Shown here: one piece after another, positions 3,261 to 43,244 of the stretch
Numbering within the stretch: position 1 is the stretch's first letter
Layout of the letters: each line of letters opens with the position of its first letter
Source of the DNA: Epithemia pelagica
Taxonomy: Eukaryota; Protista; Bacillariophyta
Direction: 5' to 3'
Length of the DNA: 64,000 nt
NCBI GenBank assembly: GCA_946965045.2
Contig: OX337228.1
Location: 3,410,001 to 3,474,000 of the forward strand
Notes under the pieces: model-generated
Told to the model about the DNA's origin: nothing
What the model saw: only the letters and a program-made list of their open reading frames with translations
Databases searched by the model: none
Translations under genes and position numbers: made by a program

Positions 3261-3312
3261 CCCAGCTGGACATCGTTGGATTGTAATATCGGGTTTGATG
3301 GTAGTGGAGCCA

Positions 3313-3901: not shown

Positions 3902-4200
3902 GGCCTAATATTGGTCATGTCCTATCTAGTTGAAATGGTGTACCCAAAGAGCGCTCCCGGGGTGTAATGGGTACACCCAGGGACGAGGCACTACCTAGCT
4001 AGATGGTGGGTTTGGTGTTAGGCGAATCGGAAATTCTTCCTCTACTCTGGTGGAATTATTGTTTGTCTACTCATTCATGTTTACATTGTATAGCCTCTTG
4101 ACAAAGTCCACATTTTATCTCCAACATCTACTACCTCAAAAGAAAGTCCAGATTAATTCAGAGTGTGAACAAGGTAGGGTCACCATATCAAGATCAAGCA

Positions 4201-9441: not shown

Positions 9442-9993
9442 ACAGATAAATTTGACCTTGAAATTTGCCCATGCTCTGTTGTCATGAAAACACACAACCC
9501 CATTAAAGAACATGCAGAGAGGCCAAGGTTGAGGATCGAAAGAGTGATGAGCCAATAGCAGCTCAAAACAAGACATGTACTTCGATCTGGCAGAGTGGCA
9601 ACGGTATCATGTCCATTGGACCGTTTTGATCCAATCCGTTAAACCGCGCACAAGACTACGCTGTTGATGAGACAGCCCGAATGTAGTCCACCAACCGAAG
9701 CCATACGATAACAGTCACATGATTCTATTGCTCAAGATTGAACGGACCAGAAAGTTTGGTATTTGAACGTTCCGGCTAGCTGGATGAGCGCAAATATATG
9801 GAGAACAGATTCCATTTCTTACCTGTCTCAAGATGCCATGCTCCATGGTGCATGATCGTGGCGTATGCCGTCGCTATGCTGTCCGTCCTCCGTCCGTGCA
9901 TATCTGGAGCGAGTCGCGGGGCAATGCTCACCCGCTTTTGGTAGCTGGAAGCTGGAAGCAATATTTCGAACTCGACAACGCAGACAAAGCACG

Positions 9994-12900: not shown

Positions 12901-12996
12901 AAGAAACTTATGGTAGGTATACTTGTGAAGCAACGTGTTGCACGAGAGTATGGGGTAAAATCATCCGACTCTGATCAAGCAATTTGCTTGAACTGA
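9994..12996 (+). CDS. XPC: XPC/Rad4 nucleotide-excision-repair damage sensor
   Basis: C-terminal BHD1-3-like motifs: MPTSKTAFANHPIYILKSQL, FAGEFVYLRRDV, LYALWQT, IPLNEHKNVEL, YAPCLIGF, GPVVRGIVV. Start placed at ATG 9994; the ORF track extends to 9865. Confidence 0.85.
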   Translation: MSFEWNSDDDGADNSDWTDKPNNTKGDFNDSAHIDCMIPLEDIAENNHNDWDMEFATANQKDDGSDDENSFVDWEDADQPEISKVSSPSGVTTSTVPDTQGPTRQKFPELKPVTVNLSDAGIDEKHESLGQQKRKRPRRRNIWKFAQLSHTLQATLSNLQQAHLLSWISHVVFVSTLHEEGDVIPTLELALAASVIPSTFIKSMDISDKPKAPSVLMVQDFCTWFKQYHHQKRHDHLVQRQQNRRGRRQQRRGHRSSLRDVNPCNNILLSTAFKKWIHASFLGSSPAENNEDTDPTVEGYPVLLDGLFSNLLCLTLMRHAFGWRVRWCMVLDNVIGLDLTVNHPFLLAGTQCLSCWTSLASAWRNQTCHSVAFACDTNSTNEDSLHTKKHGIKKRKRQHDSNKDKNKEARNGYSARLPVSPAKFLWGFIEVQVLDEVGSWQNGKTTKPRTVDSKATLDSLKRHRWTHVDVSDDCFVSATNSINRTPCDSVRIDQPMSVGSKFADLQLQADRFSGSSRRDNTENLMSTSFQRNKQNSRLHSNSRRPPRNSVVTPSPVAFVVAVEHAFIQNGNCEGITFSSRSTPPFRCTDVTPRYSSSRITTLQRRCLSRLEIQNELADNASRLSVWWTSTLDAINKKASKRDSIGTYASKADSKPVTGAGSKDLIDRPSYHVNSTKKGRVMSTCVTYPKEDNELGDFQCSETLQSADFARQNDDNDIVFSNDAETEPMPTSKTAFANHPIYILKSQLGKTHVVEPSAKVCGLFAGEFVYLRRDVTTALEPRAWLYKGRKVKSCEQDKPAIRLSPRKKPASKQRFKPLRTYGVGVDNDNSERKNEMENASSSCKEDEFLRSGDRRLYALWQTVPWAPEPVGPQDPIPLNEHKNVELGLLNPGLVHIDMPGEAVHAAKVLGVPYAPCLIGFGTSGKGGPVVRGIVVHSHNAAVIQQATEEIRQHKYEKENDERQERAKKLWKKLMVGILVKQRVAREYGVKSSDSDQAICLN

Positions 12997-15006: not shown

Positions 15007-15439
15007 CGTCAATAATCTAATTGTCGATCCTTCTTTTTTGCGTTGTAAGAGCGACACAGCGCGACCTCTTCTTTACGTATCTCTGGTACAAACTCTACGT
15101 CTCGCCTCTCGCCAGTTGGTCGAGAGAAAGAACGCTAATTTAGTAGCCAATAGTCGCGGATGATTCTCCAAAACCTCATATTGTAGAGCAAAGTGTACGA
15201 CTATTTACAAAGTAGTAGTAAAAAAAGTCAACCAAATTATTTCTACAAGACCCAGCCGTGGCTGCAAGGGCCAACTGCCATCTCTATTCTCTATCACCTC
15301 TAGAGTAGCTCGAGAGAGCTACTCCTACTCCTACAATAGGGTTTGGACTGTTTGGACGAAGACGGACAAAATAGATTATCGTAACAGAAATCAGGAGTAT
15401 GAAGCAACAGGAGGTAGAGACGATAATAGATAACGGCTG

Positions 15440-16702
15440 CTATATCTCGCTTGGATCATTTGTTCTGGTATCGTATCCATCGTCAATACCGCTGATGGGT
15501 TCATTGGATGATGCTGCTTGATGCCGATCTTCCGAATGTTGTATATCTCTTAGAATCTCGTCAATTCGTTGCTGTCTAGTGTTGATGTAAACTTCGTATT
15601 CGTCTTGTTCCACGTCATCTTCGACAACAATCGGTGGCTCCTCCGTACCGTGGACTGAATCGGAATGCGATGCACCAACAGCAGGTACGACATGCATTGA
15701 ATCCCTATTGGACTCACTTGACGAAGATTGAAGAGATGTAGGTGTGACAATTACTGCACCAAGAGCTGCCTCTCCACTTTGAACTGGTGTCGCTTCCATT
15801 TGTGCAAGCCGTCGTTCACGTTCTTCCGCTCGTTGACGCTGCAAGCGCTCTTTCTCACGTGTACGTTTTTCTTTGATGAGAGCCATTTCCCGAGCTCTTG
15901 CTCTCTCGATATCCGAAAGACCATAGTCGTCAACTCGGTTGTCGAGTGTGCGCATAAAGATGACAGTAATAAGGAAACCAGAGAGCCATAAGATTGTTCC
16001 AGCAATTAGGACGAGCCCACCTTCATCGATGCTGCAGGATGAATCTGGAAATATATTGTTACAGAGATCTGACCGTAAGAAGATGAATGATAAAGATGCC
16101 GCTACAGTGCCTGAAAGCAGCACAGTTGATAAGATGATGATCTGCCATGTGTTCCATGCGATGCACGAATTGACCACGGCCCATAGAACAACCACGATTC
16201 CAAGAAGAACAGACATGCTTCCTGCTATTCTCGCCATCTCAAAGTATTTCTCTGAAAACTCTTCTTTCATAGACTGCTGGTAACCAACACAAGTTCCCTC
16301 ATCCCAGTCCCGATCATCATTTGGTCGCAACCACTGAAAGAGGCCAAGGGCAGTCTTAAATTCTCTGAGAGAATCAGTCTGTACTGAATTGAATCGCGAG
16401 AAGGTTTGTTCAAAATTTCCAGAGTCCGATCGAAACGTCAAAACTACCATACGACAAGAAGCTACTGAGTACGTTGTTGCAACCAGAGCGGCGCATGAAG
16501 CCAAGAGAAGCCCAGCAGAAATGAAGCCTCCGTGGGGAAAAGTGCTGTCACAGGAAAACGCAGAAAGAGTTAGAGTTAACAATGAATAATTATTCTTTCC
16601 AAAAGGCAGCGCTATAGAATAGACCCGTACCAGATTCCGGTGAAGTGGGTCATCTTTAGTAGACTTGTTCTTTACTGAACTTGCGGTTGTCACTTTTGTC
16701 AC
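15440..16702 (-). CDS. Four-TM membrane protein (claudin/tetraspan-like topology) with coiled-coil cytosolic tail; possible 5' intron
   Basis: Four hydrophobic segments, GLF and Cys residues in the first loop, CxxxxxxxxC in the second loop, and a charged C-terminal tail. Confidence 0.65.
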   Translation of the reverse strand: MTKVTTASSVKNKSTKDDPLHRNLVRVYSIALPFGKNNYSLLTLTLSAFSCDSTFPHGGFISAGLLLASCAALVATTYSVASCRMVVLTFRSDSGNFEQTFSRFNSVQTDSLREFKTALGLFQWLRPNDDRDWDEGTCVGYQQSMKEEFSEKYFEMARIAGSMSVLLGIVVVLWAVVNSCIAWNTWQIIILSTVLLSGTVAASLSFIFLRSDLCNNIFPDSSCSIDEGGLVLIAGTILWLSGFLITVIFMRTLDNRVDDYGLSDIERARAREMALIKEKRTREKERLQRQRAEERERRLAQMEATPVQSGEAALGAVIVTPTSLQSSSSESNRDSMHVVPAVGASHSDSVHGTEEPPIVVEDDVEQDEYEVYINTRQQRIDEILRDIQHSEDRHQAASSNEPISGIDDGYDTRTNDPSEI

Positions 16703-24385: not shown

Positions 24386-27300
24386 TCAGAACACAAGCTT
24401 TCTTTTCTTTGGATCTTTCTCTTGATCCCCAACAACCTTGGCGAAAAGTGAAGAGCGACCTTCGACATCAGGATTCTTCCTTTTGCTGGTTGCGGATGAT
24501 GCCGAAGAGGATGGCAATCCTGGTGACGACGCCATCAGGTTCAATCCCGATATAGCTTCTAGGTCATTTTCAGAGAGCGTCGAGGGGACGTGTCCATCCT
24601 TGAAAAGTACTTTTCTTCTCGAATTGACTGACTGTCCCGAGTGTGCCAAGTGCTGCATGGCGACCGTGTCCAGACTGTGAGCAGGCGGAGTTATTTCGGT
24701 CTGAGGAGACGAGTGTGGAGAAGGGCTAAACCCGACCATCTGGGATGTAGGTGGAAAGCTTGCAACCGATATGTTGCCCAATGCAGGGCTGGGTATTTTC
24801 GGCCAAAGTTGGGCTGGTGATGCCTGAAAAGCGGGTGAAAGTCCGATCTGGGTTCCGTCGGTGGAGAATATAGCGCCCTTGGTTGGATCCCGAGCTGGGG
24901 TTGTTCCTTGATCTTTCGTTTCCACGGCATCATCCACGTTTCTCGTTAGTTGGTGAACCGACCTCGTTGCTTTTTCGTCTACTGGCATTGGATCTGTTTC
25001 GGATTGCGACTGCTTTGCATGGTTGGGCTTTCCGTCAGACGCTTTAGAAACAGTCTCGTTTGAAACATCCGTCTCCTTCGTCTTCCTCAAAATTCCTGCC
25101 AAGAGACCAGCAGAATCGTTGGCATGTTCCGTACTACCTATCTCCTTTTTTCGTTTATCTGCTTCAAGTTTGGATGGAGACCGTGCTAGATCAACAGCCA
25201 TCGCGCTTGCAACCATATTTTCGGTCTTCATCAGCTCTTGCATTTGCTGCGACATTTGAGACCATCCTGTCGGACCTGTCGGATCTTCAGGAGATCCCTC
25301 CCGTGCCAACTTCTCGAATGCAGCGCGGGATTCATCTTCTGCTGGGTAGGTATCGTTATAATGCGGGGGTGGGATATGAACATAAGGAGAATAAGGAGGA
25401 TGGTGCGGATATGGGTACGGCGGTGGATACAGATGTGATGGAGAACCATACATGGGATATGGATAAGGGAAGGGATGAGGTGGATGATGAGGAGAGTACA
25501 TGTGAGGCGGAGGAATATGGGCAGTGGCTGAAGATGAAACATTTGCATCTGCCTCTGAAACACCAGCTTTGACTTCGGGGACGCTCTCAACTGGTTTGGT
25601 ACGTCCAGTTTTCACAGAAGGTTGTGACTTCACGGTTGGGGTGTGGCTGTGGGTAGATTCGTGAGTTGGGGGTCTCGTCTCAAGTTTCTGCTGGACAGAA
25701 ATACTCTTAGTATTGTCCGGCACCGTCGGAGCACGAACAGCGCTCTCCTCAAGACTCTTGAGGTATTCACGTTTGTTGGATCTTTCCACTGTTGACTTCA
25801 CTCGTCTCTCCAAAACCTGATACCTCTTTCTGAGGTGTCCGCGATCTCTGTGAGGAATCAGACGGGATCCAAGCTCGGCCCACATATGTCCCGTAATTGG
25901 AACAGCCTTGAGAAGCGTGAGATCCTCCTCCAGACTCCATCGATGAACGTTGAGGACAGCTGGCGCTGGCACTGGTTTGAGTCTACTCATGGAAGTCTCG
26001 TCAATGTCATCACTAGATTCGTGTTTCGGAGGCTTCTCCAAACGCCCTTCCGAATCAATTAAAATTCCGTTTGCTTTATACATAAGAACACAAAGCTTGC
26101 TGTACCGTTGTGAGATGATGTTCGTTGATCTCTCAGGAAGAAAGCGATCAGCAATCAACATCCACTGCTTTTCACCATAGAGATTTACTCCACGAAGGAC
26201 AAGATTATCTTCGCCGGCAGTGAACAGGTTTCTATTTCGTCGGCAGGCTGACTGCTGCTTCTCGTTGCACGGTGGTTTGAAGTTTAGCCCTAGGAACTCC
26301 TGTGGATCACTCAAGTTCTCCGAAACATCTCGGTTACCTGGAAGCAACGATGCATCAAAACTCTGCTGGGTAGCGTTCAGAACGTACTCACATGCCTCCT
26401 TATTTGATTCAATTTCGAGCAACTGGGGTTGGTCATTGTTTTCATCATGTTGGACGCTTCGGTCAATGAGAGCAAACGTATCGTCTAGTTTCAAGAGTCC
26501 TCCAATGTCGAATACTGTGTTCCCCACCCTTTCATGAATGCCTTGCTCAGCAAGCTTTCGCTGAAACTTAGAGCGAGTCAGTCTCATCTCTAACGTAGGG
26601 TCGCGAATTTTCCAAGGTTCGGCGCCAGTGGTATCTTTCAGTATGATGTTGCCGTCTTTCGCACGACTACCACGACGACTGGGTCGCCTCAGTTTGTGGC
26701 CTTTCCAAGAGTTGAACTGAAGCGAAAACCGAATTGCATCTGTTTGATTCTGCCTGAGATCATGGAGCAGACCAACTGCCGCGTCTAAAATTTCCACCAG
26801 GTCATCAGCAGTTTCACCTCCTGCCAGAAAATCAGTTCTATCGGTACGGCTTCGATGGTACTTTTGATAATGCGCGGCACGAACTGTCAGCACAGCTTGC
26901 TGTACAAGAAGCTGGTAGTGCTGTTGTAGCATTAAGGATATTTGTTTGTATTGATCGTTGGATACAACGCTTTTGTGTTTGAAAGGGAAGCTTGCAGCTC
27001 CGCTTCTTTGTCCAAGGATGTATCCTCCAGTTTGCCTTTTGCCTTTAGATCCCGTATCTGATCCTTCCCCCTTGGAATCCCTTAATGGAGATAGCTCAGT
27101 CACCGATGTACCATCACCGCTTGATCCGTGATCTAACAAAGATGCCACAGCAGCTTCGATGTCTTCTTCCTCTAGCCATCCCAGCTCCTCCGCAAGTTCT
27201 CTGTACAGTGCATCCTCAGAGCTGTCATGAGATACTGAAGACATGCAAGTAGCCTGAGTTCCTTCGACAGAGTTTCCGAAACTCGGATCAAGTTTCGCAT

Positions 27301-28312
27301 CAGCGATAAGTTTCGACGAATGTTCCTCGACACCATTTTCGACGTTGTCGTCGTCATCCTCCTCCTCCTGCTCTTCATCATCAATTTCATCCATTATGTT
27401 GTATTCATCTTCATCGTCATCTTGGAAAAGGTTGAGTACATCCGCAACCTTAAGGTTGAGTCCCTTCACCAAGCGATCGTAGTCATCGAGATCTTCATCC
27501 TCCAAAAGTCGTTCTGCAGTCAACGATGTTGCCTTCATCTGTTCTTGATCGTCTTTCTCAACTGAGAACGTTAATCCACTTTCCGTGCTTTCCTTCGCCA
27601 TGGGAGGTTTCTGTCCTGTAGTGTCTCGAGTGTCGGAGACCCGATTCTCAGGTTGCGGCATATGGGCTCGAGAGGGATTTCCGGGAGGCTTCGAGAACAC
27701 AGGGGGTTGCCGCGTGTGATACGTGTGATCTTGAGGAGGATATTGATATGAGAACGGAGGAGGAGGTGGCAGAGAGGTCGGCTTCTTAGCCGATCCTTTC
27801 GTGGATGTTGACGCCCCTGGACCATATTGATGCGGTGGTGGATGTTGGTAGTATGGATGCACGGGCGCAGAATGATGGTAGCCAGGTGGCACTGGTACAG
27901 GATGTTGGTAGAGGTGATAGGGATAGTGGCCGGGAGGAGGATACGGTTGATGATGTGGATGGTGCGGGTGCATTGGAGGCTTGACATGACTATATTGACT
28001 GGTTTGTGGCTGCGCGACTTTGGAGTTTGCATGATTCGATTTTTGTAACGGTTTTTGTTGTGGAAGTCCTTTGCGCCATGCTGGGACACGCTTCTTGCTT
28101 GAGGTTGTTGACGACAAAGCATATGCTCGCGCGGCAGCCTTGATTTCTTCCAGTGATTTTTTGGGAGCTGGTTCAGAGGGATTAATTTCATTGGAACTGC
28201 TTGTAGCAGCGACATTCGTTACTTTCGTGGTTGAGGATATATCCTTGTCGCGAGAATCGCTTTCACCCACCGACTGCCCACGTGTGGTTTCTTCCACATG
28301 TTTATCTCCCAT
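24386..28312 (-). CDS. Two-SANT/Myb-domain nuclear protein, GON4L/YY1AP1-like
   Basis: FTAGEDNLVLRGVNLYGEKQW..I..RFLPER and WSLEEDLTLLKAV...W..L...L.PHRDRGHLRKRY, preceded by QYKQISLMLQQHYQLLVQ; 1308-aa ORF. Confidence 0.8.
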   Translation of the reverse strand: MGDKHVEETTRGQSVGESDSRDKDISSTTKVTNVAATSSSNEINPSEPAPKKSLEEIKAAARAYALSSTTSSKKRVPAWRKGLPQQKPLQKSNHANSKVAQPQTSQYSHVKPPMHPHHPHHQPYPPPGHYPYHLYQHPVPVPPGYHHSAPVHPYYQHPPPHQYGPGASTSTKGSAKKPTSLPPPPPFSYQYPPQDHTYHTRQPPVFSKPPGNPSRAHMPQPENRVSDTRDTTGQKPPMAKESTESGLTFSVEKDDQEQMKATSLTAERLLEDEDLDDYDRLVKGLNLKVADVLNLFQDDDEDEYNIMDEIDDEEQEEEDDDDNVENGVEEHSSKLIADAKLDPSFGNSVEGTQATCMSSVSHDSSEDALYRELAEELGWLEEEDIEAAVASLLDHGSSGDGTSVTELSPLRDSKGEGSDTGSKGKRQTGGYILGQRSGAASFPFKHKSVVSNDQYKQISLMLQQHYQLLVQQAVLTVRAAHYQKYHRSRTDRTDFLAGGETADDLVEILDAAVGLLHDLRQNQTDAIRFSLQFNSWKGHKLRRPSRRGSRAKDGNIILKDTTGAEPWKIRDPTLEMRLTRSKFQRKLAEQGIHERVGNTVFDIGGLLKLDDTFALIDRSVQHDENNDQPQLLEIESNKEACEYVLNATQQSFDASLLPGNRDVSENLSDPQEFLGLNFKPPCNEKQQSACRRNRNLFTAGEDNLVLRGVNLYGEKQWMLIADRFLPERSTNIISQRYSKLCVLMYKANGILIDSEGRLEKPPKHESSDDIDETSMSRLKPVPAPAVLNVHRWSLEEDLTLLKAVPITGHMWAELGSRLIPHRDRGHLRKRYQVLERRVKSTVERSNKREYLKSLEESAVRAPTVPDNTKSISVQQKLETRPPTHESTHSHTPTVKSQPSVKTGRTKPVESVPEVKAGVSEADANVSSSATAHIPPPHMYSPHHPPHPFPYPYPMYGSPSHLYPPPYPYPHHPPYSPYVHIPPPHYNDTYPAEDESRAAFEKLAREGSPEDPTGPTGWSQMSQQMQELMKTENMVASAMAVDLARSPSKLEADKRKKEIGSTEHANDSAGLLAGILRKTKETDVSNETVSKASDGKPNHAKQSQSETDPMPVDEKATRSVHQLTRNVDDAVETKDQGTTPARDPTKGAIFSTDGTQIGLSPAFQASPAQLWPKIPSPALGNISVASFPPTSQMVGFSPSPHSSPQTEITPPAHSLDTVAMQHLAHSGQSVNSRRKVLFKDGHVPSTLSENDLEAISGLNLMASSPGLPSSSASSATSKRKNPDVEGRSSLFAKVVGDQEKDPKKRKLVF

Positions 28313-28444
28313 TCTGTGAGACTCCTGACATTGAATTCTTCGGAAGCCGAAGACGAGAAATCGGTCACTGCCCCTAATCAGATCATGCGCGAGAAAAGTG
28401 CTGTATCTTTCTCCTCAGCACTTGCCTGTTTGGACTTTGTGGAT

Positions 28445-28620
28445 TGCTTGTTTGCTGGTTGTCTGTTGCTTGTTGCTTGTTGCTTGTTCTGCTTGTTGTT
28501 TGTTGTTTGTTGTTTGTTGTTTGTTGTTTGTTGTTTGTTGTTTGTTGTTTGTTGTTTGTTGTTTGTTGTTTGTTGTTTGTTGTTTGTTGTTTGTTGTTTG
28601 TTGTTTGTTGCTTGTTGTTG
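28445..28620. repeat. Heptamer tandem repeat (TTGTTGT)n with degenerate TTGTTGC copies
   Basis: Period-7 array visible directly; it produces the spurious CCLLFVV and TTNNKQQ ORFs. Confidence 0.95.
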
Positions 28621-29176
28621 GGTCCGAGTGTCGAGGCCCGTACCGACCGTGACTCGTCTCTTTCACTTCCATTCGGACATCATTTTCAAACTGGCGCGCG
28701 CCGAAAATGAAGTCAAATCTCAAATTCTGACTACACTTCAGCGTGAGAGCTCAAAGTATCCCACAATGTTTCTACTAGTGATACATCGCTTATAGCCTTT
28801 GGGGGAGTAGTGTTTAAACCGGCGCGCCATTATTTCACGGGATATCAATATATATTTTTCAACATTCATACTCGTCGTACAACAGGTACGTAATAATATA
28901 AAGTATACGAAGAAGAGTACCTTGGTTGCTCAATACAAAAATATGTATGGATCTGTATGTACGGATATCGTTACAAGTACGACGATCGCGCATCCAAGAT
29001 CCAGAGTCCCGTTGAGGCCATTCCCACGAAAACTCCAAACGACCCGGATTTGACGTCACATTTACGTCTTATTTCCGGGTTCAATGCCATATCACAATTC
29101 ATACTGTCGAGATTGTAAATTCTGTGACAAAGTAGGAAAAATTCGCGCTTCTTCGTGCAGTGGTTCGTTTGCGTAA

Positions 29177-29667
29177 GGCCGTTCCTTGATATTCTGCAAA
29201 AACAAAAATCGACACATGACATCACCTTTTTGTAGACAATTGCGCGACACGCCGTCCTTTGGCATTTACAAAACCAAAACCTATAACCGCACTTTTTCCC
29301 CCAAGGCCCCCAATAGTCCCCATATTCACTTTGATGATTTGAATACTACAATTATCAAAGTAAGACATTAGGAGGACGTTCCGTCTTCCTCTTCATTGAG
29401 GTTAGGGGGACCGTTGAAGTCGAACGCGCGCCGTTCAAAAAATCCTAAACCGTCATTTTTGTTTCTGTAGGCCCAATGTACACTAGCAAAAAGAAAGCAC
29501 TATCCCTAATGTCTGTTCAGCTTTTGCCGGCCTGCAAAAGTTGGACCCAACTTTTGCAGCCTCAAAAGCTGAAACAGCGTCGAACCCGGATTTGACGCCA
29601 TATTTCCGGGTTTTTTGTGACGTGTCACCCTCCAACTTTTGTTTTTGCAGAATATCAAGGAACGGCC
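29177..29667. mobile_element. Tourist-type (PIF/Harbinger) MITE, 491 bp
   Basis: 31-bp perfect TIRs starting GGCC (29177-29207, 29637-29667) with a TAA target-site duplication on both sides. Confidence 0.92.
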
Positions 29668-30344
29668 TAAGTCGATTGTCCAGGCCATTGTGACAGTCCT
29701 ACTAATTGTCCATTGTCGAAAGAGCCATCCTCTAGATCATCTTTGGTTTGATTGTTGTTTGATGCCCCAACCCGTTCTTTAACCCAAACAAGATAGGGTA
29801 GATGTGCATACTGAAAGCCCCAATACGTCAGAATGGGTGAAGTCTAACGATGCATAATTTTCAGACTACCTCTACTACTAGAGGTAGGGGAAGCTTTCGA
29901 TGAGCGAGCTACGGATACTCAGCTAATCCTAGGTGGAGGCGGAGGGGACAAACGAGCGTTGAGCATACTCCCCTCATGATATCCGTATGCTGTTGGTTAG
30001 ATGTGACGCCCAGTTCGTTCCCACTTCCCACCATGAATTGTGCGGCAACCTTAGGTATACTACTCGTATTGGTGTGAGATGTCAGATATGTCACGTGACC
30101 AAGGTCCATGATAGGTGCCACTCGTTCCCCCTACGAGTACTAACTAGAGGAGCTACTACTTATAAGGAGTAGGTTTTTGTCACGAGCATCTGACTTGCTC
30201 TTCACTCCTTCGCAACTTTCGCACTCGCTCTTTTCTTTTTTGCGGTGTCGACTGTGAATTGACTTCGCGCATGGTGATAGAGCGGTAGACTGGGATTTCA
30301 GACAGACTTGACTTTGTGACTGTAGCGACTAGCGACAGCGTAGC

Positions 30345-30926: not shown

Positions 30927-31642
30927 AGCACCGCAGGACGGGAGGAATCGGAAACCGGATGCCCCGAATCCCGAAATCGATATGGATATCGACCATCAAA
31001 CATCTAACAGAAGAGCAAGAGCCACTCCCCCAAGATTAAAGAATGTTCCATAGGCAGCACTTGGTACCCCAAGTCGCGCGCATGCATCTCTTTTGGGCTG
31101 TCTCGACCATCTCAGAAACCCAAAAACTCACTATAGGCGAAACAGTGCAAAGAGTTTTTAGTTAAATACAACCCGATCCCAGACCCAAAAACCACTCTTG
31201 AGCATCTCCTCTCCATTGGATGCCCAAAACGAAGTCCATTGTATCCATGTAACGCTGATGTTAGTATCCAAAATCCTTCTTCTATGTATCTCCTTTGGAT
31301 TCCCGACCTTAGATCAGAGTTACCGGTCCAGCATTCGTGTTGCAAAGCCCAACGGAAACCCCCTCCAATTTATGAGAATAGAACCACTGCCGTGCTCGGC
31401 CTCCTCCCGAGCTGGACCATTCGTAACATTACTTTTTATATATCTACAAAGACAGCATACACCACTTAGTCGCACATTAATCGACATTTCTAAACTCTCC
31501 CTTTCTTATCCTAACGATTGGGCCTCTCTCTCATCTTTTGAGAGATGGACGAATGTAGAATGACCCCTCCCTCGTCTCTTTTACCTACAAGACATAGAAG
31601 CACTGTTTTGGTCGTCACTGATCTTATTGGATCCAAGCAACC

Positions 31643-34600
31643 ATGGCTCCTCAGCCAAAAGATGCCACACAAGGCGTCAAGGCACCTCCTGCACCCGTCC
31701 GTCGTTCCTCTCGTATCATCGAGGATCTTCCACCGTCGCCCAGCATGCAGACAAGAGCGATGAGAAGACAGAATGGAACGACGGTTGACAACAGTTTTAC
31801 CGAAAGGAAGAGGATGGCAAAAATACGACATACCTTCAAGCACCACTTCAAAAAACCTTGCTCTGTCTTTGGGCTTGAACGCGAAGCCCGATACCGAGGT
31901 GGATTTTTCTTTTGCTTGAATTGTGAACATGCCGACAACAAAGAAAAGGCATCTCCACATCTCTATGTCAATCGGTTCTCGGGTCTTTATGGCTGCAAAG
32001 CGTTCCACAAGAATGTGATCTTTCCCACCGATCGCAAGACAGATGAGAAGAAACGACAAGAAAAAAAGAAACAAGAAGAAAAGAGAAAGAGGCAACAAAA
32101 GAAACTCGCTGCTCTGAAAGGACTGCAAATTGAAACATCGCCATTGAAGAAGATGAAGAAATGCAATACTCCGCCATCCCCCAGTCAAATCTCCAAAGAA
32201 CCATCCACTCAATCCAGTCCATCGCCCAACACAACACCCAAGAACCCTCCCGTTGTTGCCCCACCTGACGATGCAAATTCTCCAAGACCGTCATCACCTC
32301 AAGTTACTGTTGAAGTTACAGACGGCCCCACCCCATCTCCCTCGAAAGATGATAGCGATAAGAAAGAAGCTGTCTCAACAAGGTTGACACCGACTGTGGA
32401 TACTGGGGCACGTACCCCCACAGAAATGGCAGAAACAGTCAGAATGTACTCCATTCCGTCGAATCTCTCTCACCTTGATGACAACGACGATGGAATTGAA
32501 TCAGACCGTATTCCTGACGATGATTTCCTTCCAGATTCCATAGATAATCCTGATGTATCTTAAGTCAACTCCCGCAACCCCTCTGATCCAACTCGAGGAA
32601 TGACCATTCCACAGATCTTGGATAGAGAAGAGAGTTCCATTGCTCCCACTCCAACCTCCCCGGACCAGCAAGAAGAGGAACGAAAGAAGTACACTGTTTC
32701 TCTTGTAAATGGACTTCTCTTGCAAGTTGAATCATTGAAAGTGAAACTTTCCAAAGAAGGTGAGAAGAACGCAACGCTCAAACGTCGTCTACAAGAACAA
32801 CGGTCCAAGAACAAAGCCTGACTTGACAGGATCTATTACCTCGAGAAACGCGCCCAAACCAATAGCTCTAAGGAGCTAAAGATTGTTCCAAAGAGTATTT
32901 CCAACGAGGAGAATGCGGAGATGATTGTTCGGCACATCAAGGAAGTGATAAAGGCATCTGTCAAGAACCACCAGATTGGAAGCCAGCGTTCGGACAAATT
33001 TTTTCGGATGCTCACTAACATGCTCATGAAGGACAACCTTCATGGCACACAGGCACGCAATATAATTGTAAAAGCTGTATCAAAACATTTACGTGATACA
33101 TGTCTTTCTCCCTTCAATCTTCTCCGTGAGATGGACATGAGTGGAGGTGTTCTGAGCTTATCCGGTTTGGAACTACTTCGGAAATGCGAGACCAATGGGA
33201 AAAAGGGAAAGCATACTCTAATCCCCAGTGCAGCAGCGATGAAGAAAGCCCAACAAGAAATAGAAAACTTCGCCGACAGTATTGTTCCGTTCCATACCAT
33301 CCGTAACACCAAAGACGGTTCGGAGGGATTCATCTTTCGTGGTGCAGACTCAATGACTGGAATTCTCCGGACGAACAATGCTTTGGATGGTCCGGCAAAG
33401 GAGCGAGAACACACTGTTGCCTCTACAATGGATGGGGCTGGTCTTACGAGATCTCTCCAACACACTCTAGGGGGATTAAAGTACAACGACGATTCAAACC
33501 CGCTTCAACGATCCCAGGCGGCTTGTGTACCTACCTGCTGCATCATTGGTCGGGAGAAGAAGAACACGGTACGAGGAATATTCTCTCGGGTTTTGAAGGA
33601 AAACAAAGAGGCAGCGGAGAAGGTCCTACCAAAAGCCTACGGCATCAAGAAAGTGTACAATCCACTAAATGCTGACATGGCATGTGACATGAAAGTAGCC
33701 GACAAAGGAGGTGCGGTCAAGGTAGCTAAGTTCCCTTGCGCGAAATGCCACATATCGAGTGACAACCTGACCAAAGGTCTAGGTTCACCCGAAGATTGTA
33801 AGTGGTGTGAGCATATGGGATACACCGAAACGGAAGAGGACTGGGTCTGTCGCCATTTTCCAATCTGCACTGGAGACTACGTGAGTGTACGCAAAGAAGA
33901 GATGGACAAATATGAGAAAGACATGCCGCATGTCACTAAACAGATTGAGACTATTTGGAAGAAATCTAAAATCCACATGACCAAGGCTATGGATCCACGA
34001 ATGCCTGATGACGATCTACAGAGAAGCACGATCACGTCCATCCATTTTGATGTCTCGTCAGCGTCCCAACAATCCAAGACAAAGTACTCTGGGTTTCTAC
34101 GAAAAGACCTGGAACTCCGGAAGTTGTCGACATTGGGAGATGTTCTCCAACGTCAAGAGAGACTCTGAAAGCAATTGATCTCCGAATGGCAGTACGTGGA
34201 TTGTTGCGACTGCTTGCGTCTATTCGGGAAAGGATCGTTGTGCACAGCATTGGTCATGGTAATGGACGCCCTACCATGCGTACTGCGTATGGAGATGCGA
34301 ATGGGCCAGAAAATACTCACTATGTGTTTTCGAACTGGTTTGGCCAACGCAAAGAACAATCTACTTCCTTGGATTGAAATTGGTGCCCGTTCTTTGGTTG
34401 ACAAGCAGTGCAAGGCATTCCTGAGGGGCGTTCAAAAATGTATCAACACAGAAGTATTGGGGACTGGTGACTTAGCCTTCCAGTTCGAGATCCCATTTGA
34501 GAACACTACAAAGACTATTGGCGTAGTCTCAATGACCAATGTCCAGATTCGGAAACTCATAGCTGACATATCCAAGTTGGTCAATATGTGTATTGTGGAC

Positions 34601-35308
34601 GTCGAGGACAAGAAGCTATGGGACAGATGCATGGTGCACTACTCGGCGTCTTTTGATGTTCTCAAGATTTGGGAACGACTGTCGGACGAACAAATCTTCC
34701 AGTACCAGAAGCACGCGGACTTGTGGTACCGAGATTGGATCGACCTCTACGGTGACGACGGAATCACGAACTATGCCCACTACATCGGCAGTGGGCATAT
34801 TGGGGAGTATCTGTTACATTGGCGTAACCTGACGAATCACTCTCAACAAGGATGGGAAGCTTTTAACTCTGCCTTTAAAAGCTTCTACTTCAACCGAACG
34901 CAACGAGGTGGTGCCGTAAACAAGGGGCAGGGTCATAGGTCTCGGTTGCGTCCCATGGCACGATGGATCCAGAGACGCATGGTCTTCATACTCGGATACA
35001 ATCTAGAAACAATGAGAGCAGAAGTCAATGCACGAACACCCGCAGAAGAAGCCAAGTTCAAGACATGGGTGAAGGACAATGGGGGCACGATCGAATTTGG
35101 GCAACTCAATCGAAGTCGGACAACAGATCAGGCCAATGACGATTCCAAGGAGGAGGATGATGAAGACGATAATGAAATAAAGGAGTACCAATTCGACTGG
35201 GACGTTGGGGTCGAAGTCTTGTACGACCCACGCTTGGATGACACCAACGATTTGGATACGGACTCTGAAGAGTCCACTGACTGGGACGACGACTATGAAT
35301 CTGAGTAG
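31643..35308 (+). pseudogene. RAG1/Transib/Chapaev-like DDE transposase, 1221 codons, three in-frame stops
   Basis: Four track ORFs (31643, 32600, 32921, 34175) share one frame, separated only by TAA 32561-63, TGA 32819-21 and TGA 34166-68. Motifs STMDGAG, NADMAC...FPCAKC, PCVLR, TNYAHYIGSGH, SQQGWEAFNS; N-terminal CxxC...CxxxH cluster. Confidence 0.72.
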
Positions 35309-35365
35309 AAGTGAATAATGTTTAGTAGTTACGTTTGGATCGAATGAATGAGCATTGGCGTCCAT

Positions 35366-37036
35366 CTATTTATTATACTTCTCCACAAGGGACGAAACCC
35401 AGGATAGATCGGTAGGAAAGACCATGTCCTGAAGGCCTGATGAGATACCGTCTTTGAATCGCTTCCCTCCAACCACGGAACATCCAACAAGACAACCATC
35501 GGAGGGATGAAGAGTACCCAAGTATTCAAATCCATCTATGCCACCTTCTTTGTCATATCGGTCGGGGTCATTCATGGTGAAGATTGTTTCTTCCTCCTGG
35601 TGGCGTAAGACATATAATTTGGATTGTGTCTTGGGGAATATCATGGAAACCACGAATTTCGAGCCATCGTGTTCGTACTCGTCGCCATGACTGACAGGGC
35701 AGTCAGAAGAATCCGTGGACTGGGGTGTCGCGTCCTGAAAGAGCAAATTGGATGAAGGCATCCCAGATGTGTTGGGAGATTCATAGACAGTTGGGTTGCT
35801 CGAGTCGGTTTACGAGTTGGTTCTATGAGTGGACTCAGCAGTAGAGGCATCTTCGGGGACAGGGAAAGGACGGAAAAGAATATTGTCAGCATGGTATTCC
35901 TTGGCTCTGAGAATACAATCCAAGTGATCAATTGGAGGAGTGGTGCGAAATTGACCACTCCTGCTACGATCATATCGGAATCGTTGAAAGTTGGCCGTGA
36001 CACGAACTTGGAAGGGCGAAAAAACCACATCAATTCGCTGTTCGTAGCAGCGACGCTTGAATTCGCTTGCCTCTTCACTACCCTTGATGACTGTCAGGAA
36101 ATGCCCTCTCTTGAGGGTCACTCCGGCATCTCCATCTTGTAAAGTGGGACGAACTTCACTGGAACCATAAACCGCTGCAAAGCCTAGCATGTTGCGAATA
36201 AAATTAAGATCAGATTGTGTCGCGAAGCGGAGAATTTCGTTTTGGAACGACATTCTGATCTTGCGACGTGTCATCTTGTCGTCGATGTCCTGGTAACTTT
36301 CAGAACCATCGACAAAATGACAAGAGAGAAACTTCATGTGAGAATTAGAAAGAATATAAATGTAGTTGAAGGTTTCCGTCGGGATGTTACCGATGGAAAC
36401 AGTCTCGGAATCGCGTCTCTCAGCTTGTCGACCTCGTCGATTCAGTGCCTTCACAAGAGCCTTGCGCAACAGAAACAGTCCGTGCCAGGTATTCTTGTGA
36501 AAGCATCTTGGTGAGGCGATGAGATTTTCGCCCAGTTTAACATTGTCCATGGGGAAGCAACAAATCTCGGAGTCTTCTACTGGCACGAGCTTTCCGCCAT
36601 CTCCGGGCTCTCCCGGCACTTGCTTGTAGCGAATGACATAGACGTTTTTGATCCCTTCAGCCCAGACATTCGAGGGAGAACCAAGTTGGGAGGGTGTAAA
36701 GCAAAACGTGGGATAGCGAATGGCGATGTCGTCGTTCTGGGCTTCGTAGCGAGAGATGACGTCCCAAGACTTGTACAATTCAATCTGACGACAGCCTGTT
36801 TCGTTCTCGAGAGGTAGGAAGTCGTGCTTTGGAATGGACGGGTGACATTTCAGCTTAGTTTTCGGAAACAAAGGGTAAAACAACGACAACTTGACATTTC
36901 CGTCCCAGTGTTTGTTCAGTTGGCAAATTGTGGTGGACCATTTGTCTTGGTCCTTTAGTTTGACGTGCACGAAGGTCCCAATACGGAACACATCGTTGAA
37001 CAAGGGCACGTACACAGGTCCTTCGTTCTCGTACAT
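35366..37036 (-). pseudogene. Unknown accessory ORF of the transposon, 556 codons, one in-frame TAA
   Basis: ORFs 35810-37036 and 35366-35761 share a frame with 16 open codons between the TAA (35810-12) and the next ATG. No family recognised. Confidence 0.65.
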
Positions 37037-38221
37037 GGTTTAGCAACTATTGTGTTGGATTGCTGAATGGAAAGAGTCGCAGTCAAGGCATGGAAATGGT
37101 CGTGTTGCAACAAGAATCATTATCCACCATTGGCATCCATTCGTCTAAGCCTCGGATGGTTGGTTCCGAGTACGAAGTACCGTATGAGAAATAGACATTG
37201 GTGGGATATGTTCCACCAGAAACTGTAATAATTAAAAATGATCAAAGTGGTATTCCGGAATTCTGTGGGGTCGGGGTTACATATGAGCGCAAGCATAGCT
37301 TTTGGGTGAAAATTGGGGAAAGGCCGGCTCGAAAAGCATGTTTTGTCGGAATGGATGGGATCCCAAGTGCTCCTTATGCCAAGGACGAGCAGACCGGCGG
37401 ATAGTCTATACTCCGAAGCGGAAAGCAGTCGTTGTAAGATCGCGTTTTTACCGAGGAATAATTATCAATCCTTGTATCGGCACTGACAAGATATGACCGC
37501 TGAGAGAGAGATATTGCACATACGAATACCGAATCCGCTCTATGGTGTACGGTAGTACGTACGGACTCCGGGGGCCGAAAAATTCCCCCACAATATCCTG
37601 TGTTTCACGTTCGTGAGACTTCCGGCCCTACGAGATTCATGACTCCATTCATTTTCTCAAAGTAAAATGAATTGCCCCTCATCATCCACAAGACGTTCAC
37701 GTATCTCGCAGTCGTGATGAACCTTTTCACCATGACGAGGCGCTTACCCTTCCTGTGCGAGTAGTAAACAACAATCATACAAGTGCAAAATATACGACCC
37801 ACTTATTAATTATAAGCCTTTATTATGTAGTCACCACCACTGCTGCTTGTTGTCATGGGTATAGGTGATGGTTTCACTTGGAGTTGGTTGTTGCATTTGT
37901 TGTCGTTGTCGCGGCACAGGATTGTCTCGTTCGGCCGAAACAAGGCGTTGATCGTTGTGTTTGTTGTAGAAACGTAGAACTGAAAGAACCAGAGATGGAG
38001 AGCAGTTGATTGTTGCTTTTGGTGCCATTGTCATTGTCGTGGCCCCGGATTGTTTTGTTCGGCCGAAACGATGAGTTGATTGTTGCGATGGGGGCATGCA
38101 TGCTACGCGAGGCCAAAACCAGTTGGTTGTGTGGTTGGTATCTGTTGTCATGTTTGTGGGTGTCGTATCATCATTACCATCCGATGGCTTGCTCGTTGTG
38201 GCTGTTGGTTTTGTCGTCAAG

Positions 38222-38507: not shown

Positions 38508-41500
38508 CTACCAACCCATAATCTTTTTACGAGCCGTTTCGAATGGTCCTGTGTCCAATGGTTTGGTAAAGGCGTCGCCAAGTTGATCTGTCGTTGCGAT
38601 CGCTTTCATGAAGATGCCGTTTGGATCAGTACTGTTGGGTGAGTTGATGTGTGTGCGGAACCAGTGATATTTGATTCCAATGTGTTTGCTACGCGGTGTC
38701 ATTCGTGGTGGATCTTTCGTTGCCAGTTGTAAGGCGGCTTGATTGTCCTCCCAGACGGTGCAAACGAAACTTGGGCCCGCTGGATTCAGATGCAAATGAG
38801 TAATTATCTTGGCCAATTGATTGCGTAGTGGAAGGAGTGTACGCATGCTGGTTGAGGCAGCGATATACTCGGCTTCCATGGTTGAGAGTGCAATCTCAGT
38901 TTGTAGTTTACTGCTCCATGTGATGGGGGATTGACCGATGGTAATGATGAACCCAGTGCGCGACCGTACGGAAGTTGGATCATCGGGATTCTCGTTACTC
39001 CACAGGCCAGCGAAATCGGCGTCCACATAACAATGCAGACTCAGATCCTTGGATGGTTTTAGGATTAGGCCCCTCTCCGCGGTTCCCATGAGGTAGCGAC
39101 CGATTCGTTTTAGTGCCTCTCCATGTAGTGCTGTGGGGTTGTTGCTGAATCGTGCCGTTTGGTTGATGGCGAATGCGCAGTCGGGTCGCGTGTTATTCCC
39201 AAGGTAGAGGAGCATGCCCACCACGGATCGGTAATTGTAGTCGGCGTTGAGTGGTGTTCCGTCCAGGTCTTTTCCAATTGTTTTCGTGGCAGGTGTAGCC
39301 TTGGGATTGGATTTTTCGAGTCCCAATGCGCTGATGATGCTACGAGTCAAGTGCGGTTGTTGTAGCTCGACGGTGCCATTCTCATGATGCTTGATTTCGA
39401 CTCCGAGGTACGTTGGAAGATCTCCGAGATGTTCGTAGTCCATCTTCATCTGTGTCAGTCCCTCGAGGATTCGATTGACGCTTGCTTCGTCGTGTCCACA
39501 AATCACTGCGTCGTCGACATACGTGATCATCACACAGCCCATTCCGATGAAGAGACATGGGTCGGAACCGTCAGGCTTGAGTCCAATTTGTTCCAGTTTG
39601 TTGCGTAGGTAATCGTACCATAGTCGTGGTGCTCGGCAATCGCCGTAAAGACTCTTGGTCACTTCTAGGACTTTGTCGCTCTGGCCTGCCCCATATCCTT
39701 GTGGCAGATTGACATAGATCGGTTCGGGTAGATCCGATTGGACAAAGGCGTTCTTGAAATCGATTGAGACCGTGTGTAGCTTGTGTTGGATGGACAAGTT
39801 GAGAAGAAGACGGACGGTTGGCCAATCAATCACCGGTGCGAAGGTATCGTCTCGGCTAAAAGATGCCTTCTGCTGATCTCCACGGACGACCAATCTTGCT
39901 TTATACCGGGAGATGGTCCCATCTGGTTTCCGTTTCCGTACAAAGGTCCACATAACATCTACGATCTCCTTTCCTTTTGCTTGGATACGAGGGACAAGTT
40001 TGAATGTTTTCTTGTTCTCGAGCTCATTTAACTCCTTGTCCATAGCAGCAATCCACTTGTCCTGTTCTTCCTGAGGCAACAAACGGATGTCAAAGTAGGA
40101 TGACGCGTCTTCGTTAATGGCTTTGGCACTGAAGTAGAGTGGATGCCAATCGTCGATGATGCCTAATGGCGACTGGATTTGAGCCAGGAGGCGTGAATCG
40201 AAGGTAGATGTGAGCTTGTCTGGGTCTAGTCCGTTAGGAAAATCCCACTTGATGGAGTTGGCATAGTGTCCAAAAGCTGTTGGATCGTCGTTGATAGCCG
40301 TCATGGAGAAACGTTGCTCTGTGACACTTGTGTGTGCCCAAGAGCTGTCTTGATGGGAATCCACATTGTCTGGAAATCGTACTGGAGCGCGACGTTGACG
40401 GTGAGGTCGGCCTGTAGTGGGTTCATGCGTCGCATCAGAGGCTGAACTTGGTGACGACTCGCCCATTTTTGAACGAGGTGACGACTTGCCCGTTTTTGAA
40501 CGAGGTGACAACTCGCCCGATTTTGAACTGGGTGACGACTCGCCCGGTTTGGATCAAGGTGTGGTAGGCATGTCGTCGGAAGTGGAATCGAAAGAGTCAG
40601 TCTCGTCAGTCTCGGCAAGTGGTGACAGAGGAGTGATATCGTCCAATTGGATGGGTGTCACGTTAGGATGAGATTCAAGAGTCGTCCGGCGATGGTTACG
40701 ACCAAGATCTAATGGTGTGCTTGGTGTAGTAGGCTGGTCGTGTGACGGTTGCTCTGCTCGCTCGCCCTCGGGGACATTCGGAACTGGAAGGGACGAAGTG
40801 TCGTCAAAGGATACCTTGGGAAGGGACCAGACTGAATCCAAGTCGGGTAACGGTCCATCACGTGTCGGATCGTGGTCGTCGAGATAGTGATCGCGGGTGA
40901 AGAAGTCGGGTAAACTGTTGTCTTGGGGGAATGACCACGTGCTGTTGACAGACATAAATAATTCGTCGTACACCACATGAAACTGGGGGGAAATGTGGCC
41001 AGTGTCCAAATTCCGAATCATGCCCACCAGACTAGAATGTTGGGGAGAGAAACCCAAGAACTGACCACGACGAGACCGGCGTGCCCACTTGGGAAGTTTC
41101 TTACCGTCCTGCAATTTTGGATCCAAGACGTAACTGGGACAACCCCACACACGAACTCGACGCAACAGAGTACAATCGATCTTGGTGCCAGAGAACACTT
41201 CCATTGGACACATGTCGTTGTCTTCTTGAGGGACGTGATTGTAGATCCAGGTGGCGTATTCAAGGGCCATGGGCCATAAAGACGGTGAAAATGCTGACGG
41301 CCATCGAATGTGACAATGGATCATCATGGCTCGGGCCATGTATGTAACTGTTTGAATCGCCCGTTCAGCACCTGCATTGGCATGATGAGCTCCGACACCA
41401 GAGAGTGTGCTCAAGGGAGAAGGAAAAGTGTTCCGATTGGTCTTGAGAGATTCCTGAAAAGCGTCTGAGGTAAAGACACCGTTATCAGAATGGTATCGAG

Positions 41501-43244
41501 TAACCTGTCGGCCAGCCTGATGGAGGGAGACTTCGAATTGGTTCTTGGAATTAATGGTGTCACTGCTACCAAGGGAGACTTGTGGATAGCAGAAAATGGC
41601 TTTTGAACCATGGTCAAAGAAAATGGTACCACCCACAAAGCGATGCTCTGGTCTTTCACGGCCTCGTGTGTGCCAAAGGCGGCCTCGAACGGTGGACTCG
41701 AAGTGATCCATTGAAACCAATTCACTGGGAGAGAGTTTTCGGTCTGTTGGAGTCAAATGGCCTGCTTGGGAGTGTGGTACATTAGCCTTGGACTGGGTTG
41801 GCCGACGTCGAGCTTTGGCGTACAAGCATGCCAGGCATTGTGGTGCATCACAACTACCACTGCTCTTGAATGTGGAAGGTAGACATGATGTTGTGCCATC
41901 GCTTGGGTCAGAGTTCGAGTTGTCACGATAGAGCCTCTGGATACAACGCATATGAATATGTCCCAAGCGTTGATGATCCAACAACAATTGTTTCTGTGGT
42001 CGGCTCAAGTTCCGATTCGTCTCGTCCAAGGGATTTTCGTCATGTTCGGCCAAGAACTGATGCAATGTGAGCTGATTATTGGTCACAGATGCAGTTTCCA
42101 AGGGACATCGACACCACTGATTAAATCCGCAACGACAATCAACCGGTCGGTGCTGGGCCGTTGCTTGAGTGTGATTCTTGATGTGCTTCACTCGAACGAT
42201 GGGAAGATTACTAGAATAGTCGATGGGTACAGTAATGCGCCGTTCGGATTCCTTGTCAATCATAATGCTCGCGAATGATTGGTTGCTGACGAAAGTTGGG
42301 AAACGTTGGTCTTGACGGAGGTAAGCAGCGTTAATCTGTGGAGAGCAAAGTCTTGTACCAGCTGCCTTACAGAGGTTGGCTGGATAGACCCATCGTCGTA
42401 CAGTGCCGTCTTCGTGAATGGCGTCATATCCAACAATACCGGCGCCGATGATAGGAAAGCGGTTGTCACTTGCGGCAGTGGACATGGATCTGTAATTGCC
42501 GTATACCAACTCAACAAAATCATCCTCACTCATGGTTAAGCCATTGGAGGCGCCAGTGTCAAGGATAATGGGTACCACTGGATCACTTGGAGCGTCGTCA
42601 GTGTGAGCGGCTTGAGATACGATCATGGTCGGATCGATATGATGCATGGCATAACGGTATGTGAAACGGGGTGTCTCACAATTCGCACGTAGAAGGTTGC
42701 TAAAATCTGGACCAAGGGTGTAGATCTTGGGATCTCTTGACAAAGGTAACAGCTTGAGCTTGTCGTAACAATCAACCGTGTGATTGTGCAAACGTAAAGC
42801 ACGTATCGTGGGCCAATGGTTCTAATTCGTGGCAGATCTTGACTTGGACCATGTGCGTCTTTGTGTTCTCGTACCATGCTCGCCCCTGACCCGTGGAGGA
42901 GTGAAACTCATGACTCCCAAAGGGTAAGTTGACGACGTGAACATGAGGAGATGAAAGGCAAGGTAAAGGACCGAAAGTGGAGTCAAACAAATCACGTGAT
43001 CGGATAAGCAAAGGCGACTATCGAAACCACTAGGAGGAAAATGGAACGGAGGTTTGGGAAGCAACCGATTGAGGTGACGAAGGTGAGCTCGACTGGACGA
43101 CGTAAACCGATACAAACAACCAACCAAAGTCAACACAAAACAATCAACCGTCGAGATCAAACAAAACCAACCACAGAGGCATAGCCAACAAAGAATGGTG
43201 TCCAACCAAGGAGGATAGAGGGCATTGGAGTGCTGGAGAAACAC
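38508..43244 (-). pseudogene. pol of Copia A (PR-INT-RT-RNase H) with in-frame stops at 42822-24 (TAG) and 40554-56 (TGA)
   Basis: IILDTGAS protease; HQRLGH...CDAPQCLAC, SMDHF, SDNGVF, AERAIQ integrase; YKARLVVRG, DFKNAF, SLYG, YVDD RT; YVDADFAG, STMEAEY, DQLGDAFTK RNase H. 27-bp x4 repeat at 40444-40551. Confidence 0.93.

Follow-up and report, generated by a model that had tools for sequence, protein, structure and literature searches.

What gene lies behind the four separate open reading frames (ORFs) between positions 31643 and 35308 of a 64,000-nucleotide stretch of the Epithemia pelagica genome (contig OX337228.1; the whole stretch is called the window below), and does the likeness to the RAG1 recombinase, which an earlier note had read from a few motifs, stand up? 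We find that the four fragments very probably belong together as the transposase gene of a cut-and-paste DNA transposon with two genes and a RAG1-type core, present here as a dead copy. Translation agrees with the earlier note that the four ORFs are one reading frame: the forward strand of 31643-35308 is a single frame of 1221 sense codons with exactly three internal stops (Table 1), as against ~64 stops expected by chance in a random frame of the same composition. Over its whole length the frame can be aligned with an intact transposase of 1208 aa from another locus (L005; 84.4% identity), and since the gaps in this alignment are all in-frame, there is no frameshift. At the three window stops (32561, 32819, and 34166, in order) the L005 protein has leucine (TTA), arginine (CGT), and arginine (AGA).

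The transposase frame lies inside a bounded element carrying two genes, which did not figure in the earlier note (31049-37378; Table 1). Similarity at the DNA level to two copies at other loci (L003 and L005) starts exactly at 31049 and ends at 37376-37378, and the window element can be aligned from its position 1 to 6330, end to end, with two intact elements (L009 and L010; 85.6% identity). At 31048/31049, the Logan short-read contigs of this organism part into several different flanking sequences, that of L005 among them. The element ends in 23-nt imperfect terminal inverted repeats (TIRs), both of them identical in L005, L009, and L010; a more distant copy, L004, has a 24-nt terminal repeat (CAATACGAGCACTGCTGTATCAAT) that has the pattern CA..A..G.AGCACT in common with the window copy. 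The end sequences read 5′-CATAGGCAGCACTTGG / CATAAGGAGCACTTGG, and CAATACGAGCACTG in L004, with T or A, never C, as the third base; the termini are of the form 5′-CA..TG-3′ (CATAGG...CCTTATG in the window copy, L005, L009, and L010; CAATAC...GTATTG in L004). The terminal 51 nt of the right end are 98% identical between the window copy and L003, although the two elements are only ~70% alike overall, as expected if predicted transposase-binding sites lie there.

A single identical base is found at both flanks in all seven bounded copies (C/C in the window and L009; A/A in L005, L010, L011, and L003; T/T in L004), with the reservation that the right tips of L003 and L011 carry substitutions, which makes these two less clean for the count. 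Because matching flank bases in all seven would arise by chance with a probability of only ~6e-5 (1.6e-2 when only the three cleanest copies are counted), a 1-bp target-site duplication (TSD) is well supported. Target duplications of 2-9 bp were looked for at the element ends and none was present. TIR searches in L001, L002, L006, L007, and L008 gave no trustworthy ends, and these loci are outside the duplication count. We also considered extending the TIR outward to a CAC start, as CA precedes CATAGG in L003, L005, and L011, and rejected it, as this is not so in the window copy, in L009 and L010, or at the right ends.

Further inside the element there is a subterminal motif, CTCG(A)CCATCTCAGAAACCCAAAAACTC, located ~50-80 nt from the left end (31097-31130 in the window) and seen also in L001 (6347-6363 and 12525-12541) and L003 (about 8906-8940). 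Its conservation is 84% in comparison with a copy that has only 45% identity in its proteins, and L001 has the core of the motif a further time near the right side, in inverted orientation; the motif may be a second transposase-binding site. In L003, the right end and its flank are tandemly duplicated as a 261-bp unit (15190-15550), leaving two identical right termini.

The motif coordinates given in the earlier note (DG, the second Asp, CxxC, PCVLR, TNYAHYIGSGH, and the Glu) are all correct, and the residues they mark are conserved in the homologues. In an alignment of 50 family members (23-92% identical; residues of the transposase core are counted from 32822), the following are at least 90% conserved: D204, D285, C306, C309, C326, C329, C343, H345, C486, L488, H489, and E491, and further T649-N650-Y651, H653, H659, S674-Q675-Q676-G677, and E679. 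Given such conservation among sequences so diverged, the putative catalytic and zinc-ligand residues are not a product of chance. In the structural model described below, the three predicted catalytic residues have the canonical DDE layout: D204 is part of strand beta-1, D285 comes directly after beta-4, and E679 is in a helix. Two features that the earlier note had read as signs of decay or of a distinct subfamily come apart on comparison with relatives. The arginine in place of histidine in the LH motif is a private H-to-R substitution of the window copy, since the relatives have LH (for example L005, L003, P0001, P0003, and P0004). The spacing of five residues between the two histidines is no sign of decay, as H-x5-H is found throughout the 50-member alignment and is a trait of the whole family.

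Two additional groups of conserved cysteines and histidines may bind zinc. We know of no counterpart in RAG1 of the second cluster of the core (C326, C329, C343, and H345), which is a possible extra zinc site. The N-terminal module (31736-32026) has no match in Pfam; from its invariant Cys and His residues it is probably a zinc-binding module that contacts DNA. The mouse RAG1 protein has its catalytic residues at D600, D708, and E962 and its zinc ligands at C727/C730 and H937/H942 (PMC4914335). The last His is 20 residues from the Glu in the family and in RAG1 alike, and the distance from the second Asp to the first Cys is similar (21 vs. 19); the two His are separated by five residues in the family and by four in RAG1, and the CxxC is 344 residues from the first His, vs. 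207 in RAG1.

Database searches at the sequence level gave little. Pfam scans of the four frame pieces found no match, and at E ≤ 1 the 50 family members matched neither RAG1_*, Transposase_21, Transposase_24, or DUF4218 nor any other Pfam family; a single-sequence search and two profile searches against all PDB chain sequences returned only chance matches (E > 0.3), with no RAG1 or Transib. Among protein-language-model neighbours, those with names were the RAG1_RNase_H/ZnC2/ZnH2 families, besides DUF1280 and one SAP cluster, and there was no CACTA family. We then used structure prediction, folding residues 385-1150 of an intact relative (P0021, with 92% and 88% identity to the two pieces of the core in the window) with the 50-member alignment; the resulting core model has a mean predicted local distance difference test score (pLDDT) of 89.8 and a predicted template modelling score (pTM) of 0.83. 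When the model was compared with the PDB using Foldseek, all 49 matches at E ≤ 1e-3 were mouse or zebrafish RAG1, amphioxus BbRAGL, or HzTransib (best E 7.6e-12; the solved comparison structures in this RAG1/ProtoRAG/Transib group are 4WWX, 6DBO, 6B40, and 6PQX), and the next family was ISCth4 at E 0.014. Superposition of the model (residues 89-733) on RAG1 (459-1008) scored 20-21 over 443-472 residues (4.2-5.5 Å), the HzTransib hairpin-forming complex 20.9 over 412 of 480 residues (4.3 Å), and BbRAGL 19.4 over 467 residues (5.8 Å). By this superposition the dimerisation/DNA-binding domain, pre-RNase H, RNase H, ZnC2/ZnH2, and C-terminal domain of the RAG1 core would all have counterparts in the window frame.

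Could the RAG1 match be an artefact, either of a generic RNase H fold combined with a helical bundle or of an over-confident AlphaFold model? We regard this as highly improbable. The P element (THAP9-type) and the hAT transposase Hermes, resemble the family in being cut-and-paste elements and in combining an RNase H-like DDE core and a large helical insertion domain; they scored 11-12 over 342-356 residues (5.6-6.2 Å) and 7.5 over 291 residues (6.0 Å), respectively, with ISCth4 at 8.9 over 265 residues (5.8 Å). Retroviral integrases scored about 6 over 121-160 residues (3.2-5.6 Å), and the alignment of their cores starts at model residue 197, in the strand that carries D204. The assignment to the RAG1/Transib/CACTA-Mirage-Chapaev (CMC) clan made by the earlier note is thus upheld at the level of fold and motifs only, by structure prediction, fold search, and the conserved D, D, E, and zinc positions, and its named relatives, which are from diatoms, also support it.

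Downstream of the transposase lies a second gene in convergent orientation (Table 1). Its frame in the window is 94% identical to an intact 556-aa relative (P0006), and a convergent gene follows the transposase in all 11 of the relatives' loci that we examined (L001-L011). The partner is recognisably the same in L001-L005 and L009-L011; the three distant members (L006-L008, a Seminavis robusta copy among them) also have a convergent gene, and the partner profile matches two of the three (E 4.7e-16 and 2e-5). Pfam scans of the partner found nothing relevant, and a language-model search gave no usable match. A model of the window's own first 408 residues, built with 18 relatives (pLDDT 80.3), matched in Foldseek, up to E 0.001, only BAH domains and BAH-containing methyltransferases (EBS, BAHCC1, DNMT1, MET1, and DIM2, from 1e-4), followed by AIPP3, PBRM1, Rsc2, and Sir3 at E 1e-3 to 1e-2. 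A beta-rich domain without a solved match spans residues 205-356, and nothing in the model of these 408 residues resembles the Kelch propeller of RAG2. The predicted BAH-like fold suggests that the partner may have a role in chromatin targeting.

How does this element compare with the known systems that share its fold? Transib elements are defined by 5-bp TSDs, ends made of a 5′-CACAATG heptamer, a spacer, and an A-rich nonamer, a transposase of ~700 aa with detectable sequence similarity to RAG1, and an overall size of 3-4 kb (Kapitonov and Jurka 2005, PMC1131882). In contrast, the element described here has a 1-bp TSD, CATAGG or CAATAC ends instead of a heptamer and nonamer resembling recombination signal sequences, an intact transposase of 1208 aa, and two genes in 6.3 kb. 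The core fold with its DDE residues and CxxC/H..H zinc site appears from the model to be common to the family and to Transib/RAG1, but no similarity to the RAG1 Pfam models or to the solved Transib and RAG1 chains is detectable in the sequences; the spacing is H(5)H rather than the H(4)H of RAG1, ProtoRAG, and Transib, and the insertion between CxxC and H..H is ~140 residues longer, with the extra conserved CCCH cluster. A true Transib-superfamily element, i.e., direct kin of RAG1, is therefore very unlikely. ProtoRAG has two convergent (tail-to-tail) genes inside its TIRs, and so does the element here; however, RAG2, the second protein of the ProtoRAG/RAG unit, consists of a six-bladed Kelch propeller and a PHD finger, and the partner here is BAH-like. 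The hosts differ as well, being animals for RAG1, ProtoRAG, and Transib and a diatom for this family.

An ordinary member of the CMC group (CACTA/EnSpm-Mirage-Chapaev), with a RAG1 likeness that reflects only the fold common to CMC and Transib, has more in its favour, and we still consider it unlikely. CACTA elements, too, encode two proteins. A predicted-structure cluster with Transposase_21/DUF4218 (CACTA) matches our model with template modelling (TM) scores of 0.52/0.50 over 483 residues, and the CMCT clade (EnSpm/CACTA, Mirage, Chapaev, Transib, Plavaka, and ESTA, as well as Lanisha) has C(2)C and LH motifs, H(3-4)H before the Glu, 5′-CA..TG-3′ termini, and TSDs of 2-5 bp (Kojima 2025, PMC12730594). 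The family shares the C(2)C (C306-x2-C309), the LH motif, and the CA..TG termini; as with ESTA, its RAG1 likeness is seen only by structure-aware comparison. On the other hand, its H653-x5-H659, at the same position before the Glu as in RAG1, is one residue longer than in RAG1 and outside the 3-4 of the clade, its TSD is 1 bp and not 2-4 bp as in CMC, and it has a BAH-like partner gene. CACTA/EnSpm elements are recognised by a Transposase_21/24 or DUF4218 match, CACTA termini, and a 3-bp TSD, and the family has none of these: 0 of 50 members match these or any CACTA or Plavaka family in Pfam, the ends are CATAGG/CAATAC, and the named language-model neighbours (RAG1 families and DUF1280) include no CACTA family.

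Several observations weigh against a particular tie to RAG1 or against the two-gene element as we describe it. The sequence methods (Pfam, and the sequence and profile searches of the PDB) give no link to RAG1, Transib, or CACTA, so the link to RAG1/Transib rests on predicted structure, motif order, and motif spacing. The predicted CACTA cluster is about as close to the model as RAG1 is (TM 0.52 vs. 0.53-0.55 by query). The profile of the BAH-like partner has no match to the convergent gene of the Seminavis robusta copy, and no RNA run was found that contains the stretch. Because the CACTA cluster matches about as well as RAG1 and the structure library that we compared includes no solved CMC structure, the fold, as predicted, puts the family in the RAG1/Transib/CMC clade and does not fix its exact place inside it. 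The ends, the length of the duplication, the H(5)H spacing, and the BAH-like partner fit none of RAG1, Transib, and CACTA, and for this reason we file the family as an undescribed lineage of its own, which resembles the RAG1/Transib/CACTA (CMCT) clade in its predicted fold and probable mode of action. The literature that could be searched, which is incomplete and does not include Repbase, describes no Transib- or RAG1-like element in diatoms or stramenopiles and no transposon that encodes a BAH domain. As a tentative proposal, held with less than even confidence, this may be a superfamily-level RAG1-fold lineage, known so far only from diatoms, that remains active in this species, leaves 1-bp target duplications, and depends on a BAH-type chromatin reader of its own.

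The family is large and many of its members are intact. A word search found four relatives, and in an exhaustive search with a profile 2309 cluster representatives matched at E ≤ 1e-3 (1198 at E ≤ 1e-10); the only names that these carry are "hypothetical protein", from Seminavis robusta and from a Bacillariaceae metagenome-assembled genome, and there are also unnamed metagenome contigs of about element length. A long-read assembly (ENA ERZ21939226) contains many diverged intact transposase ORFs of 1000-1282 aa. Intact copies, for which the earlier note suggested looking, include the L005 transposase, L009, and L010. The last two lie at different loci, have intact versions of both genes, and share 98.8% identity over 6.28 kb, which indicates recent transposition in the family. 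Between the window and L005 subfamilies, dS (synonymous substitutions per site) is about 1.06 and the ratio of nonsynonymous to synonymous substitutions (dN/dS) is 0.08 (0.04 in the core), so the transposase lineage has long been under purifying selection. Profile searches in all six frames found no further copies in the window. Two side observations were made in these data. One cluster (P0079) contains nine near-identical transposases on JGI/ENA metagenome contigs of 5.99-8.1 kb from different marine metagenomes; contigs of about element length would be expected from the repeat-collapsed assembly of an element with many copies, or from an excised form. Near the right end of L005 (4485-9871) there is a 5.4-kb insertion, probably a retroelement, with a 5-bp duplication (GTTCC) and a 1129-aa ORF.

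Strong purifying selection, together with the uniform database name "hypothetical protein", is also what could be cited for a decayed pair of host genes that were never mobile, such as a domesticated recombinase or a locus-specific duplication. We find this scarcely credible: the boundaries are sharp with inverted ends, copies lie between unrelated genes at many loci, each flanked by a 1-bp duplication, two intact copies are 98.8% identical, and the short-read contigs are repeat-collapsed and break at the element end.

The window copy is a young, dead member of a family with intact members, and the suspicion in the earlier note that it is dead proved right, there being three nonsense codons in its transposase frame. 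Compared with those short-read contigs of the same organism that match it at 95% or more, the window has differences at about 0.8% of positions. The contigs have T at 32562 (TTA), C at 34166 (CGA), and G at 35811 (TCA in the partner), so that two of the three stops in the transposase, and the stop in the partner, are private to the window copy. No difference is listed at 32819, the third transposase stop. Most of the window's differences are C-to-T and G-to-A, and 9 of the 16 listed transitions are at CpG, a pattern that fits deamination of methylated cytosine in a silenced element.

From these parts, a working cycle can be proposed for intact copies. The intact protein of ~1200 aa consists of a Cys/His module at the N terminus, a coiled-coil linker, and a ~650-aa core with a predicted RNase H fold, the D, D, and E residues, and a zinc site from the CxxC and HxxxxxH. 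By analogy with RAG1 and Transib, the enzyme would bind the conserved 5′-CA..TG-3′ ends, with the N-terminal module probably contributing to DNA binding, and would cut the element out by nicking its CA ends in a DDE-catalysed reaction, which may pass through a hairpin as it does in RAG and Transib. Insertion with cuts staggered by one base would leave the 1-bp duplication, and the BAH-like partner, as a chromatin reader, may help targeting or regulation on chromatin. The window copy is no longer capable of this, with three nonsense codons and the H-to-R change in the LH motif of its transposase and one nonsense codon in its partner.

Table 1. Features of the transposon copy in the window (positions counted from the first letter of the window).
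Feature	Position	Strand	Basis
Whole transposon copy, 6330 bp	31049..37378		DNA similarity to copies at other loci
Target-site duplication, 1 bp, C/C	31048 (left copy); 37379 (right copy)		Flanking-base comparison
Left TIR, 5′-CATAGGCAGCACTTGGTACCCCA	31049..31071	+	19/23 complementary to 37356-37378
Right TIR, reverse complement 5′-CATAAGGAGCACTTGGGATCCCA	37356..37378	-	Inverted-repeat pairing
In-frame stops of transposase frame	TAA 32561-32563; TGA 32819-32821; TGA 34166-34168	+	Translation
N-terminal module, invariant C73, C91, C94, C118, H122	31736..32026	+	14 full-length relatives
Region matching RAG1 core in relative's model	33086..35020	+	Structure superposition
Predicted first catalytic Asp, D204 (D-G-A; D-G 33431-33436)	33431..33433	+	Beta-1; model strand 197-207
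Predicted second catalytic Asp, D285, directly after beta-4	33674..33676	+	Model strand 282-284
C306-x-x-C309, 21 residues past second Asp	33737..33748	+	Alignment
Second cluster, C326, C329, C343, H345	33797..33856	+	At least 90% conserved
P-C-x-L-H-M-E motif, LR in window copy (CGT 34286-34288)	34277..34294	+	C486, L488, H489, E491 at least 90% conserved
T-N-Y-x-H653-x5-H659 (T-N-Y-A-H-Y-I-G-S-G-H)	34766..34798	+	At least 90% conserved
Predicted catalytic Glu, E679, in S-Q-Q-G-W-E, 20 residues past H659	34856..34858	+	Model helix 676-692
Partner gene, convergent, 556 codons with one in-frame stop (TAA at 35810-35812 of the + strand)	35366..37036	-	Translation
BAH-like domain of partner, residues 1-165	36542..37036	-	Predicted structure

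The surroundings of the element were also annotated. About 1.4 kb upstream there is a perfect 32-nt inverted repeat (29176-29207 and 29637-29668, with 429 nt between the arms), which could be a small insert resembling a miniature inverted-repeat transposable element or a hairpin, and a long (TGTTTGT)n-type array with 7/14-nt units lies at 28432-28650. Immediately to the right of the transposon is a Copia-type retroelement (38508-42791, reverse strand; RVT_2 and retroviral SH3-like). Host-type genes in the window encode an FkbM-type methyltransferase (8188-9441), a Rad4/XPC homologue (BHD1-3; 9865-12996), and a 1308-aa Myb-domain protein (24386-28312). Two adjacent long ORFs of 478 and 570 aa (4201-7381, reverse strand) have no Pfam match and no likeness to the transposon proteins.

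RAG1/Transib is the textbook case of a transposase domesticated for immunity, as RAG1 assembles antibody genes, and the PHD finger of RAG2 reads trimethylated lysine 4 of histone H3 (H3K4me3). To our knowledge, almost all known kin of RAG1/Transib are from animals. The window copy itself adds only a dated example of decay; what matters is the diatom family, which is large, selectively maintained, and recently mobile, and has the same predicted core with other ends, another stagger, and an unrelated partner resembling a chromatin reader. If the tentative proposal made above is true, a RAG1-type enzyme has gained a chromatin-reading partner independently of RAG2, which would make such a partnership a recurrent solution and not an accident of the vertebrate lineage. 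The family offers an outgroup for asking which features of RAG1 are ancestral to the fold, and a natural experiment on the question why enzymes of this kind are accompanied by a second protein. It also shows that proteins annotated as "hypothetical", by the hundreds in the genomes of diatoms and in marine metagenomes, are transposases, and it may yield a new transposon tool for diatom genetics.

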